A DNA stretch of 64,000 nt, from assembly GCA_965637545.1 (NCBI GenBank), contig OZ281494.1:2728001-2792000 (forward strand). The letters are read 5' to 3'. The notes under the pieces are model-generated. The model saw only the letters and a program-made list of their open reading frames with translations. It searched no databases and had not been told where the DNA came from. The position numbers and the translations under genes are program-made. Positions 48,171 to 60,966 of this stretch are shown piece after piece; position 1 is the first letter of the stretch, and the number at the start of each line of letters is the position of its first letter. Source of the DNA: Phallusia mammillata. Lineage: Eukaryota.

Positions 48171-49529
48171 TTAACGATAAAACAACATGAAGGTCGTTTC
48201 GATCATGAGCTTATCTACGCTCCAATCTATTCCTGTTCCAACTCCATTGTAAGCCATGCCGGCAAAATCACCACAGTGTTTCACGCTGTCGTTGTGTCCA
48301 GTTGATCCAATGCAAGCGGTTTCAGGATTGCTAAAATCAGTGTTGACTTTAACTCAGAGCGTATGCCGCTTTTGTGGTGCCGTAGCCTAACAAAGTTCTA
48401 AACTGGAAATAAATTGAATACCATTTAATACATACTACGACTTGGTATATATCTGAAACCAAAATTAAACCAATTAGTTAAATTTATGATACTATATTTT
48501 TTTCGCTAAAAACAAACATTCACCTGAATGTATCCTGGTGTGAGATAAGGTTGAGCATCCGGTCCAAAATGCTGAAGCACATCACCCACCGACCCTTCAT
48601 CAAACACCACAGGTACACTGGGACCGTTGTCATCTGGCCAAGAGTAAACACCAGATTCGACAGGAAACGCTTTGTAGAGTGAATACAAGTTGCCCTTGTC
48701 TCCGAACGCGTCGAGAAATCTGTTCTCAGTTCGATATCGAAGGTAGGAAGACTTTCGCCAATTACTCAATGGTGTTTCGTTAGGAACCTTCAAAATAAAA
48801 TGTTTTTTCCTTTTATCAATCAAAATTTCTCAGTCAACATAACCTAGCAGTTTATAAATTTGCTTGTTAAGTTGGCTATATAGTTTTTGAATTTGTAGTG
48901 CTGCATTTCTGGGGTCTTTTTATACGGCAAACAACGACAAAATCACTGCTTTAGCGCGTGACAAATTCAACCTGCCAAATCATCAAATCTCCGGCGTCGA
49001 TGTCGAAGTAACCTGGGTTTTTGTAATCGTCGCTGGTCGCCGACACCACGTTACCGAAGGTGTTCATATTCGCCCAAGTGTTATCACCCTTGGGTAAAAG
49101 TGGGGAGTTTCCCTGCTGACTGGACCACCGGTCACCCTGGGTGCAGTATCCGTTCGCCTCGATGTTGTTCTCATGGATGCTGGCGATCAGCGTCCAACCT
49201 CCCTTGTTAGTGATCATGTCGCAATATGTGAGGTAAGGAATTCCGTTTGAATCGTGCAAAGTGTAGACGCCACTCATCGGTCGCTCGGTAGCGTTGTTGA
49301 GCAGCTCCAGACAGGACGATTGTGCATCTGTTTACACATATCAGAAATACAATATAATATCACACTAACTTTAACTTTTTTATTGTTGCCCAAAACTCTG
49401 GAAATTTATTTTGACAAAGGTTCGTAAACCGCAAAGGTTATGTAAACTATTTTCCATTACTCTACCTGTAAATCCCGGTTTTCCGCACAGTACAGTTAAT
49501 GTCAGCAGCAAACCTATAAGCTTGTTCAT
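48171..49529 (-). pseudogene. ITLN: Intelectin copy A, frameshifted in exon 4
   Basis: Exons 49529-49466 (signal peptide [21 protein letters not shown]), 49327-48972, 48787-48524, 48402-48171. Exon 4 is 232 nt versus 240 in copy B: an 8-nt deletion at 48355/48356 gives TAA at 48351-48349. Confidence 0.85.
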
Positions 49530-51938
49530 TTCTTTCGCTGATATTTTTCTATAACAAACAAATTAAATATTTGTCACAAATGTGTTATTATTTGCTGAAG
49601 TTAATTTGCCTGATGTATTTGCCTCACAATAAAGATATTTTTGTACTTCTCTCTGTACTTCGGTTCTCTAATGATGTCGCTGATCGTATGAGCCCATTAT
49701 ATACTGTTTCGAAAGAAAGAAATAGGGAGAAAGCACAAATTATATCGTGGAGGACAGCTACTAAAATTACGTCGGAGATATCTCGATCAAACCTGTTGTT
49801 TTTTGGGTTACATCGAATCCCATAATATCTTATGTGTAGTTGAGCTTTTCTGTAGCAATCACAAAGTTTTTGACCATTTTTTCTGAAAACATACAAAGAC
49901 CTTTGTGTTTACGATAAAGGGGGTGCTATTGCTCCCTTCAATCCACCCTCCGATTTGCACCTACCGAATCCCTTTGGCAAGCGCAGATGATTTTGTTCTC
50001 ACCAACTGACCGTTCAGAATATAAAAGGGATTGGTCTTTATGAACTTTTTCATCGTTGCGCTCCCGTGGTGATAATTATAAAATGTGCGTATATTTAAAC
50101 ATGTGTTGTTCATATGGATAGCTTTTTTTACCCATTATGAGTCGGCAAACATGTTTTGTTCATAGTTTCTGCACCTTCAAAGTGTTTAAATTGCATTGCA
50201 TACATATTCTGTTCATTTGACGAATTGAAGTAGTAAGGCTAACATTTACACCTTTAATCGGTTTTTGATTTTAGTCTATTTGAAGCAGCACTGAAAAACA
50301 AATGCGAAACCAGACTTTTTTGATAGCTTTGGAACTATACCTTCTTTCTTTGCGGGGCATCGCAGTAAAAACTGAAAAAATAAAAAAATAAAACACGTTT
50401 GAGTAAAATTCAAAAAAGCTAAGAGTACACATTTGTTGGCCTTTTGAAGACTTTGTTTACATTTAATATTGGTCGTTGGGAATAAACTTTGACAACAAAG
50501 TCAGTTAAATGTTTCGTTTTTCTAAGTCAAAGCCAATTTTAACATCTTCGGTTTCTACCCCATACATTCTATCGACGATACGATGATTTTTGATCATTTT
50601 AAAATACTTCGTTGTTTAGCAACCCACCGAGGTCCAGTTTGCCAACACAGATGGCGCGGTTCTCACCGGCGGACAGTTCTAATTTAAATTGACCTGTTCA
50701 TAGCACCGCATACTGAGCGATATATCCAAGGCATTTCACAGCTATGCCCTGTACAGTGGGGTAAACAATTTGATGGACATAATGCTGTAATTGACTCCTG
50801 TTCATTAAAATGCGAAATTTTATGTTAATTTTGCTTCCAGGCTTTTAGACTTAGTCTTTTATGTGCCTGATAAGTAATGATTAATTTCGCAAAACAAGTA
50901 ACTTTCTCGGTTTCTGGTTCGAGTTTTGCCATCATTATCAAATTTGCCTTCTTAATAATCTTTCAAAGGGAAATAAGATTTGACTGGAATCAAGAAAAGG
51001 CTAAAATTGTTGGCTGCTTTAAATTTTTTCAAAGCACCTTAACAATCTGGTTTGGATCTTGATTTTACTTCAATGTGTTTTTCGTTTTTCAGTTTTTACC
51101 CCGATATAGCTCAAATAAGATATAGCTCAAAAGATTCCAATCGTAAACCGATCAAAAGTGTATATTTAAGCCTTAAAACCTCTGTTTGTCAAATCAGCAG
51201 AATGAGCATGAAATGCAATTTAAAAACTTGTGCAAAAATGCGCAGAATCTTTAAACAAAACATGTTTTTTGACTAATTGGTAAACAATGGCCATCCATGT
51301 GAACAACACGTGTTTAAATAAACGAATATGATATAATTATCACCACGGGAGCGCAACGATGACACAGCACACACAGACCCGTCAGTTCTTCTGAACTGTC
51401 AGTTCGTGAGAACAAAATCATCTGCGTTTGCCAAAGGGATCGTTATACGGTACAAATCGGAGGGTGAATTGAAGGGAGCAATAGCACCCCCTTATCGTAA
51501 ACACAAACATCTTTTTGCGTATTTTCACATATATACGTTTTGTGATTGCTAAAGAAAAGCTTACCTATATTTTAAATTTAAGGTATTTATTGTAACCCCA
51601 GTTAAAGATCAGGTTTCACCAGGAGATAAATTTCCGACTAAATTGTGCTAAGCTATTCTGATAGACGCCCCTTGCGAAACAATTTTGGCTTTCTCTCCAT
51701 TTCTTCTTCTCCAAACAGTATATAATGGGCTCATACGATCAGCGACTTTATTAGATGGCCGAAGTACAAAGAGGAGTAAGACAAGATTGTGAGGCAAATA
51801 CTTCAGGCAATTTACCTTGAAACAAATAATAAAACATGTGTGACAAGAGTTTTGTTATAGAAAAAAAACATAAAAGAAAAAATTGTTATAGAGAAAACAA
51901 ATATAATTTGTTTGTTATAGAAAAATATCAGCGAAAAA

Positions 51939-59871: not shown

Positions 59872-60966
59872 TTAACGATAAAACAACATAAACGTCGTTT
59901 CGATCATCAGCTTATTGACGCTCCATTCTATTCCTGTTCCAACTCCACTGTAAGCCATCGCAGCGAAATCACCGCAGTGATTTCACGTTGTTGTTATATC
60001 CAGTTGATCCAATGCAAGCGGTTTCAACATCAACAAAATCATTGCTGACTTTTACTCTAGGACACAGAGCATATGCCGATTTTGCGGTGCCGAAGCCTAT
60101 CAAAGTTCTAAACTGCAAACATATTTATTACATCATTCAATTTAACACATACTGCAATTAGGTCGTGGTTAAAATGAATTTCAACAACCAAAGTTAAAAC
60201 CAATAGTTTAACTTATTGTAATATAGTCCATAAAAACACTTTTACTTGAATGTATCCTGGCGTAAGATGAGGTTGAACATTTGGCCCAAAATGCTGAAGC
60301 ACATCACCCACCGACCCTTCATCAAACACCACAGGTACTCTGGGACCGTTGTCATCAGGCCAAGAGTAAACACCAGATTCGACAGGAAACACTTTGTAGA
60401 GTGAATACAAGTTGCCCTTGTCTCCGAACGCATCGAGAAATCTGTTCTCAGTTCGATATCGAAGGTAGGAAGACTTTCTCCAATTATTCAGTGGCGTCTC
60501 GTTAGGAACCTTAAAATATTTCAACAGTTTATGTTTACATGGTTGGTGGTTTATTTATGCTTTTATGCCAACATCTAAAGTGAATGACCGAGCAAAGTAA
60601 CAAATCCTACCTGCCAAATCATCAAATCTCCCGCGTCGATGTCGAAGTAACCTGGGTTTTTGTAATCGTCGCTGGTCGCCGACACCATATTACCGAAGGT
60701 GTTCATATTCGCCCAAGTGTTTTCACCCTTGGGTAAAAGTGGGGAGTTTCCCTGCTGGCTGGACCACCGGTCACCCTGGGTGCAGTATCCGTTCTCCTCG
60801 ATGTTGTTCTCATGGATGCTGGCCACCAGCGTCCAACCTCCCATGTTAGTGATCATGTCGCAGTATGTGAGGTAAGGAATTCCGTTTGAATCGTGCAAAG
60901 TGTAGACGCCACTCATCGGTCGCTCGGTGGCGTTGTTGAGCAGTTCCAGACATGACGAATGTGCAT
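59872..60966 (-). pseudogene. ITLN: Intelectin copy C, lacking exon 1 and the exon-2 acceptor, frameshifted in exon 4
   Basis: Exons 60966-60611, 60509-60246, 60112-59872. Exon 4 is 241 nt: a 1-nt insertion at 59980 gives TGA at 59971-59969. The acceptor AG is replaced by an A-run; no signal-peptide exon found to the right within the window. Confidence 0.85.

Follow-up and report, generated by a model that had tools for sequence, protein, structure and literature searches.

Intelectins and mosaic gene families

Intelectins are secreted, calcium-type sugar-binding lectins of innate immunity, which recognize microbial sugars. In the present study, we analyzed a 64,000-nt stretch of the Phallusia mammillata genome (assembly GCA_965637545.1, contig OZ281494.1, positions 2,728,001 to 2,792,000 of the forward strand; hereafter the window, with positions counted from its first nucleotide). 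The window contained one full intelectin copy on the plus strand (B), two on the minus strand (A and C), and one remnant, D. It was observed that exons 2 and 3 were nearly identical among the full copies, while exon 4 and the introns were strongly diverged. The best explanation of this pattern, and in our judgment a likely one, is that exons 2 and 3 were homogenized by homology-limited, non-allelic gene conversion.

To our knowledge, the diversification of the intelectin repertoire outside mammals has been little studied. The mouse Itln locus, with six paralogs, resembles the Phallusia cluster in its tandem expansion, birth-and-death evolution, pseudogenes, and variable sugar-contact residues (PMC8324875). 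In mouse, conversion was suspected between recent duplicates but only assumed (PMC8324875), whereas the contrast between exons was measured here; moreover, unlike the recent mouse duplicates, the cluster copies are old and their introns cannot be aligned. A literature search found no description of the concerted evolution of intelectin exons and nothing on ascidians, the conversion at the mouse locus being a passing assumption (PMC8324875).

Mosaic concerted evolution through interlocus conversion has been well documented (PMC3924837, PMC2720389, PMC3728101), and the present case is a known process in a new gene family. As in opsin exon 5, RHD/RHCE (PMC3924837), and Tigriopus GOT1 (PMC3728101), the paralogs are mosaic, and a functionally important segment is divergent. 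In those genes, however, the introns and flanks are homogenized (for opsin, it is the introns that are converted; PMC3924837) and a narrow peak under selection escapes, whereas in the present cluster exons 2 and 3 form the homogenized islands and divergence is the background. The cluster also shares segment-wise concerted evolution and mosaic trees with BMP8A/B, DDX19A/B, and TUBG1/2, in which the converted parts have a raised GC content at third codon positions (GC3) (PMC2720389). Those are gene pairs with homogenized introns; the present cluster comprises about 20 copies, including pseudogenes, and its introns are not homogenized.

The homology searches were run exon by exon. Exon 2 matched residues 46-143 of the human ITLN1 chain (E = 2.4e-37), exon 3 matched ITLN1 residues 145-230 (E = 1.5e-17) and XEEL residues 128-213 (E = 3e-21), and exon 4 matched ITLN1 residues 233-306 (E = 1.2e-7). 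Besides human ITLN1, the intelectin matches were limited to XEEL and the lamprey lectin. The Pfam Fibrinogen_C profile reached 19.1 bits over exon 2 residues 7-49, which was below its cut-off of 22, and exon 2 also gave weak matches to fibrinogen beta chains in the PDB (E ~2e-3). A word search with the exon 2 frame of B returned only vertebrate intelectins, 61-67% identical, and no close relative. As in the vertebrate intelectins (ITLN1, 4WMY/4WMQ; XEEL, 4WMO; lamprey serum lectin, 7E1E), exons 2-4 were collinear with ITLN1 residues ~53-313, the C-terminal end was the same, and a leader peptide was present. Unlike those of vertebrates, a cluster gene consists of four coding exons and belongs to a group of about 20 linked copies, most of them dead.

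Divergence of exons and introns

Copies were located by translated searches using the B reading frames. Alignment together with splice sites defined the exon borders in A, B, and C, and spliced RNA-like contigs confirmed those of B. The exons compared were as follows.

48171..48402, minus strand: A exon 4, 232 nt, lacking 8 bp that are present in B and C, near 48352
48524..48787, minus strand: A exon 3, 264 nt, 16 differences from B
48972..49327, minus strand: A exon 2, 356 nt, 8 differences from B
52174..52529, plus strand: B exon 2, 356 nt, intelectin domain core, the most strongly homogenized segment
52677..52940, plus strand: B exon 3, 264 nt, core homogenized, both ends more variable
53075..53314, plus strand: B exon 4, 240 nt including the stop codon, not homogenized
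59872..60112, minus strand: C exon 4, 241 nt, with a 1-bp insertion near 59980
60246..60509, minus strand: C exon 3, 264 nt, open, 13 differences from B
60611..60966, minus strand: C exon 2, 356 nt, open, 12 differences from B

A and B differed at 8/356 positions in exon 2, 16/264 in exon 3, and 44/232 in exon 4, and the length of intron 2 was 184, 147, and 101 nt in A, B, and C, respectively. These counts exactly reproduced those of the original prediction, an earlier reading of this DNA, which had also described a pile-up of differences at the ends of exon 3 and an unalignable intron 2. Both descriptions held. The mean pairwise difference in exon 3 was 0.05-0.12 in the core and 0.135-0.155 in the first and last 30-60 nt, and global intron alignments barely exceeded shuffled sequences (0.43 vs 0.34 for intron 2; 0.50 vs 0.44 for intron 3). 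Identity was ~0.95 in the exons, and no more than ~20 nt from each exon border it had fallen to 0.25-0.36, the level of random sequence. In intron 2, the first two 10-nt bins had identities of 0.74 and 0.60, and sharing reached ~17-20 nt.

Codon analyses were performed per exon, and pairwise synonymous divergence (dS) was estimated by the Nei-Gojobori method.

A-B: dS 0.086 in exon 2, 0.146 in exon 3, 0.681 in exon 4
A-C: dS 0.110 in exon 2, 0.206 in exon 3, 0.303 in exon 4
B-C: dS 0.079 in exon 2, 0.088 in exon 3, 0.639 in exon 4

The dS values were not similar across the three exons, that of exon 4 being far higher for A-B and B-C. Synonymous differences in exons 2 and 3 together, compared with exon 4, amounted to 14/135 vs 21/47 for A-B (Fisher p = 1.5e-6) and 10/134 vs 22/51 for B-C (p = 8e-8); for A-C, they were 18/135 vs 12/48 (p = 0.07).

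The wider cluster was surveyed by a DNA search of the whole assembly with B exon 2, and the surrounding region was then analyzed. We found 19 full-length exon 2 copies and several fragments within ~130 kb on the contig that carries the window (C1), most of which were 94-98% identical. The cluster comprised about 20 four-exon copies, tandem and inverted, and mostly pseudogenes: exons 2-4 were open in about six copies (B, G72, G83, G124, G143, and G161), and the remaining copies carried stops, frameshifts, or deletions. Across 77 cluster pairs, the median dS was 0.118 in exon 2, 0.206 in exon 3, and 0.692 in exon 4, and the median nonsynonymous divergence (dN) was 0.033, 0.063, and 0.247, respectively. 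The dN/dS ratio was therefore ~0.3 in each of the three exons, which indicates that the exons differ in the depth of their divergence and not in the kind of selection acting on them.

Unlinked paralogs, recent duplicates, and pseudogenes

Three comparisons bear on the low synonymous divergence of exon 2. Against unlinked paralogs on another contig, its silent sites were saturated, with a proportion of synonymous differences (pS) of 0.67-0.75, indicating that there is no intrinsic synonymous constraint in this exon. The recent duplicates G83 and G124 were 96-99% alike, in exons and introns equally; the divergence of the other introns thus reflects age and not an unusually fast turnover. In pseudogenes with stops, frameshifts, or large deletions, exon 2 had a median identity of 94-96% to the other copies, and the flanks of the same pseudogenes were ~72% identical or unalignable.

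A decayed piece of exon 2 is also present in the window.

47282..47714, minus strand: remnant D, 83 nt of exon 2 and an exon-4-like piece, no exon 3

The exon 2 piece of D was 87-90% like the full copies, which were 95-97% identical among themselves. Its exon-4-like piece was 76% identical to B.

Exon trees and chimeric copies

In approximately unbiased (AU) tests, the maximum-likelihood (ML) trees obtained from the other exons were rejected by each exon alignment, with p between 1e-63 and 0.011, so the exon trees did not all match one duplication history. The trees of exons 2 and 3 were short and star-like (lengths 0.50 and 0.77). The exon 4 tree was deep (2.31), with well-supported clades that were not shared by the other two. 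In the window, A grouped with B in the upstream region and with C in intron 3 and exon 4.

Two copies of the cluster were chimeric. G164 combined the upstream region and exon 2 of G143 (95% and 97% identity) with the intron 2 and 3' part of G86/G127 (91-99%). G161 had the upstream region and exon 2 as in G83 (97.8% and 98.3%) and shared nothing with it from intron 2 on. Both junctions coincided with the border of exon 2 and intron 2; the gene varies least at the end of exon 2. GC3 was 0.67 in exon 2, 0.43 in exon 3, and 0.40 in exon 4, and it was 0.50-0.58 at the same codons of the unlinked paralogs. The high GC3 of exon 2 would fit GC-biased conversion.

The original prediction had attributed the pattern to ectopic gene conversion, which stands as the best explanation in view of a dS in exons 2-3 that was 6-8 times below that of exon 4, the conflict among the trees, the chimeras, and the homogenized pseudogenes. 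We infer the following course of events. A, B, and C are old duplicates, with non-coding DNA that can hardly be aligned and an exon 4 dS of ~0.6-0.7. Non-allelic homologous recombination, chiefly gene conversion, would have repeatedly replaced exons 2 and 3 with sequence of other copies. The exchange tracts would be limited to these two long, protein-constrained exons, the only stretches with enough uninterrupted identity: tracts would need unbroken identity at both ends, and once the introns had filled with indels, the exons alone could exchange. Such exchange would hold exons 2-3 at 94-98% identity (dS ~0.1-0.2) in working and dead copies alike. Exon 4, which bears the sugar-contact loops and tolerates more amino-acid change, would have dropped out of exchange and kept the background divergence.

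The sharp end of identity at or near the splice sites, together with the expression of B, could also be produced by RNA-templated conversion, in which the complementary DNA of an expressed copy such as B would repair breaks elsewhere, leaving tracts that stop at exon borders. No copy lacked intron 2 or 3, however, although such a loss is expected wherever a tract crossed an exon junction. The conservation of ~17-20 nt into intron 2 involves sequence that is absent from the mRNA, and the chimeras take in at least 600 nt of upstream, non-transcribed DNA. We consider an RNA template highly improbable.

Several results weigh against conversion as the cause of the homogenization. The evidence was drawn from the paralogs of one species, and independent sequence confirmation of full exons covered only B. 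Exon borders are no barrier to classical conversion tracts, and the introns that separate or flank exons 2 and 3 were not homogenized. A published screen demands a homogenized intron in order to separate conversion from purifying selection (PMC2720389), and introns 2 and 3 of A, B, and C were near random. The pairwise homoplasy index (PHI) was not significant in any exon (p = 0.71, 0.69). In exon 2, the fraction of incompatible pairs was 0.376, compared with 0.265 in a tree-based simulation, and 18 of 200 simulations reached the observed value (p ~0.09). The rise in GC3 was restricted to exon 2. Finally, the exon 2 dS of ~0.1 was low yet nonzero, which indicates that the homogenization was neither very recent nor complete. 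Four-gamete counts within exons were set aside as support, the incompatible pairs (38-50%) showing no dependence on distance (p ~0.7).

Some of these observations agree with an explanation without conversion, in which strong purifying selection would act on exons 2 and 3, silent sites included, while exon 4 and the introns drift. The close tracking of exon borders by identity, the unhomogenized introns, the dN/dS of ~0.3 in exons 2-3, and the nonsignificant PHI are all consistent with it. Nevertheless, copies that are unable to make protein (C, G178, G140, G86, G127, and others) were equally identical, and the silent sites of exon 2 were saturated against the unlinked paralogs. In addition, the exon trees were in strong conflict, the chimeric copies show that exchange happens, and the short remnant D had decayed to 87-90%. 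Purifying selection as the sole cause is already disfavored, and we regard it as very unlikely.

Support from independent sequence

The similarity was sharply limited to stretches where short reads map multiply, and short-read contigs ended inside exons 2-3. These features would be expected if mis-mapped paralog reads had pulled the consensus of A and C toward the majority during assembly or polishing, and if some copies were uncollapsed haplotypes. At position 49156, all of the depth of run X1 carried the majority letter and not the assembly letter. Moreover, the species is highly polymorphic (~2-3% in intergenic DNA, run X3), and block duplicates that are 95-98% alike could be haplotypes. 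On the other hand, RNA-like contigs of another study confirmed the four exons of B with zero mismatch, private variants were kept in every copy, and stops and frameshifts within exons 2-3 of other copies had survived polishing. Contigs of runs X1 and X3 bridged unique introns into exon ends without differences, and the non-coding DNA of A, B, and C was far too diverged for haplotypes. A polishing artefact is excluded for B by the RNA-like contigs and retains a small probability in A and C; as an account of the whole pattern, we give an artefact only a slight chance, and conversion remains the preferred explanation.

Intact and expressed copies

Among A, B, and C, only B is intact. The 5' features of the three copies were as follows.

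49466..49529, minus strand: A exon 1, open, type as in B
51718, upstream of B exon 1: TATA-like motif, conserved in class-1 copies
51939..52002, plus strand: B exon 1, start codon and a 21-residue hydrophobic leader (judged by eye), ending in codon phase 1
61123..61186, minus strand: C exon 1 remnant, class-2 type, aligned with exon 1 of G161, G83, and G124

B exon 1 corresponds to a block that is conserved ahead of exon 2 in the class-1 copies. In data of a separate study (runs X6 and X7), two RNA-like contigs of 976 and 880 nt joined the four exons of B with zero mismatch. The splice joints were located at 51999/52171, 52527/52675, and 52937/53072, all of them GT..AG, and the contig sequence extended to 53347, past the stop codon in exon 4. 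These results demonstrated that B is transcribed and that its exon combination is real. Judging from its leader peptide, the B product is probably secreted. The longer contig (run X6) had its first base at 51920, directly following a potential acceptor site located 19 nt ahead of the start codon. Either a trans-splice acceptor or an unassembled 5' untranslated exon could account for this start; the contig itself included no leader letters.

In A, the 8-bp deletion in exon 4 shifts the frame and leads to a premature stop at 48349-48351. DNA contigs of run X1 spanned A exon 4, with no indel reported. An alternative acceptor that would restore the frame was considered, and none was found on reading the sequence. 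No RNA contig fell on A in runs X6 or X7. By its reading frame, A is a pseudogene or would give a truncated product without the sugar site. C has three lesions: ATA instead of a start codon, the AG acceptor of exon 2 replaced by a run of A, and in exon 4 the 1-bp insertion, after which the shifted frame ends early at a stop codon (59969-59971).

In run X1, B exon 4 also occurred in a second form, which had five changes within 48 nt (53098-53145) and a depth of 139/306. This form would carry three amino-acid changes and one silent change, and one of the amino-acid changes falls at the position equivalent to human N243. The second form is no obvious conversion tract, since its five letters occurred in 0 of 14 full-length copies of the exon 4 alignment, and it is probably an allele.

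Exon 4 and the sugar-contact positions

The sugar-contact residues of ITLN1 are 243, 244, 260, 262, 263, 274, 288, and 297 (PMC8324875), and the aromatic box of W288 and Y297 matters for intelectin specificity (PMC12800186). In a HMMER alignment, all eight human contact positions mapped to exon 4, in line with the earlier claim that this exon carries the carbohydrate site. Unlike ITLN1, B keeps only one of the eight contact residues, N260; the other seven are T, D, Q, T, N, F, and W. The 262 equivalent is E in most paralogs. Since seven of the eight residues are replaced, the calcium-and-diol binding mode of B may differ from that of ITLN1, and the homology is unaffected.

The contact positions were more variable than the rest of the exon. 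Amino-acid entropy was 1.59 at the eight positions vs 0.84 for exon 4 (permutation p = 0.008), and the excess persisted when the ambiguous first 13 residues were left out (p = 0.027). At the positions equivalent to E244, N260, and W288, 6-9 different residues were found among 13 copies. The ratio of the proportions of nonsynonymous and synonymous differences (pN/pS) at the contact codons was 0.43-0.67, below 1. For exon 4 as a whole, dN/dS was 0.2-0.45, about as in exons 2-3, and the divergence of the exon equaled that of its non-coding flanks. Selection is therefore not needed to explain its divergence. The original prediction had treated exon 4 as specially divergent, which these values contradict.

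An adaptive model may nonetheless be set on top of conversion, in which selection for different sugar specificities would keep exon 4 divergent by removing converted exon 4s. The location of all eight contact positions in exon 4, their raised variability (p = 0.008; 0.027), and the 6-9 residues at the W288, N260, and E244 equivalents among 13 copies would be expected under this model, as would the second form of B exon 4, with its three amino-acid changes and one silent change in 48 nt. Reviews also report divergence islands that are maintained by selection under conversion (PMC3924837, PMC3728101). However, the dN/dS of exon 4 was the same as in exons 2-3, the contact-codon pN/pS of 0.43-0.67 did not exceed 1, and the exon was as diverged as its non-coding flanks. 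Pseudogenes, with a broken exon 4 or other lesions, account for two of the three copies in the window and for most of the cluster. Furthermore, the introns flanking the selected segments of the opsin and RH genes are homogenized, and those of the cluster are not. We therefore consider the adaptive model possible but doubtful. The idea of a constant scaffold with a variable binding module, put forward in the original prediction, fared accordingly: the contact positions are indeed variable, but B is the sole intact, expressed gene among the three in the window, and exon 4 is broken in A and C.

A more speculative possibility, which we consider unlikely, is that the cluster works as a germline cassette system. 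Exons 2-3 would serve as homology anchors that re-assort divergent 3' modules onto expressed 5' modules. Each 3' module would consist of intron 3 and exon 4 with its sugar-contact loops, and pseudogenes would also contribute such modules. The variability of the contact positions and the two chimeras joined where exon 2 meets intron 2 are compatible with such a system, although the data carry no sign of selection for re-assortment or of an unusual rate. An analogy is offered by the pseudogene-templated diversification of chicken immunoglobulin genes, which in the present case would take place in the germ line instead.

Arrangement of the locus and other intelectin copies

A and B are arranged head to head, in an inverted repeat of ~1 kb per arm around a spacer of ~1 kb.

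49328..50208, no strand: left arm of the inverted repeat (A side), with intron 1, exon 1, and the promoter region
51200..52173, no strand: right arm of the inverted repeat, upstream of B, pairing with 49328..50208

The arms were ~84% identical over aligned bases, exon 2 excluded, with many indels.

The short fragments gave no clear trend of homogenization with segment length: D (83 nt) and one 175-nt fragment were 87-91% identical, and other short fragments were 94-98% identical.

Three higher-order repeat blocks were observed on C1, at ~2810000-2818500, 2851600-2860400, and 2888600-2896400. Each comprised one full copy, one copy with an exon 3-4 deletion common to the blocks, and one further copy. 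Blocks one and two were 95-98% alike, and given the high polymorphism, these two could be uncollapsed haplotypes instead of true duplicates. In G174, intron 1 carried an insertion of ~160 nt, located ~100-260 nt upstream of exon 2 (C1:2902773), which the other class-2 copies did not have, and the exon 2 acceptor of G174 was CG where AG is expected.

Distant intelectin copies, 67-72% identical to B exon 2, were located at C5:17192922-17306845, C6:3305193-3703476, and C3:27385522-27414009. Some of the C5 copies showed stops or gaps in the exon 2 frame.

Implications

The cluster is an unusually clean natural case of probable homology-limited conversion, in which two exons are alike across about 20 copies, dead ones included, and all other parts show the old divergence. 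Internal controls come with the locus itself: recent duplicates, unlinked paralogs, and a decayed remnant. For work on this cluster family, trees or duplication dates that are derived from exons 2-3 will mislead, and neither short-read mapping nor expression counts on these exons can be traced to a particular copy. The identity of a copy can be read only from exon 4 and the introns. The ligand of B, which lacks most of the canonical sugar-contact residues, is of interest. If the cassette system were true, it would mean haplotype-level diversity of lectin specificity in an invertebrate chordate without adaptive immunity.

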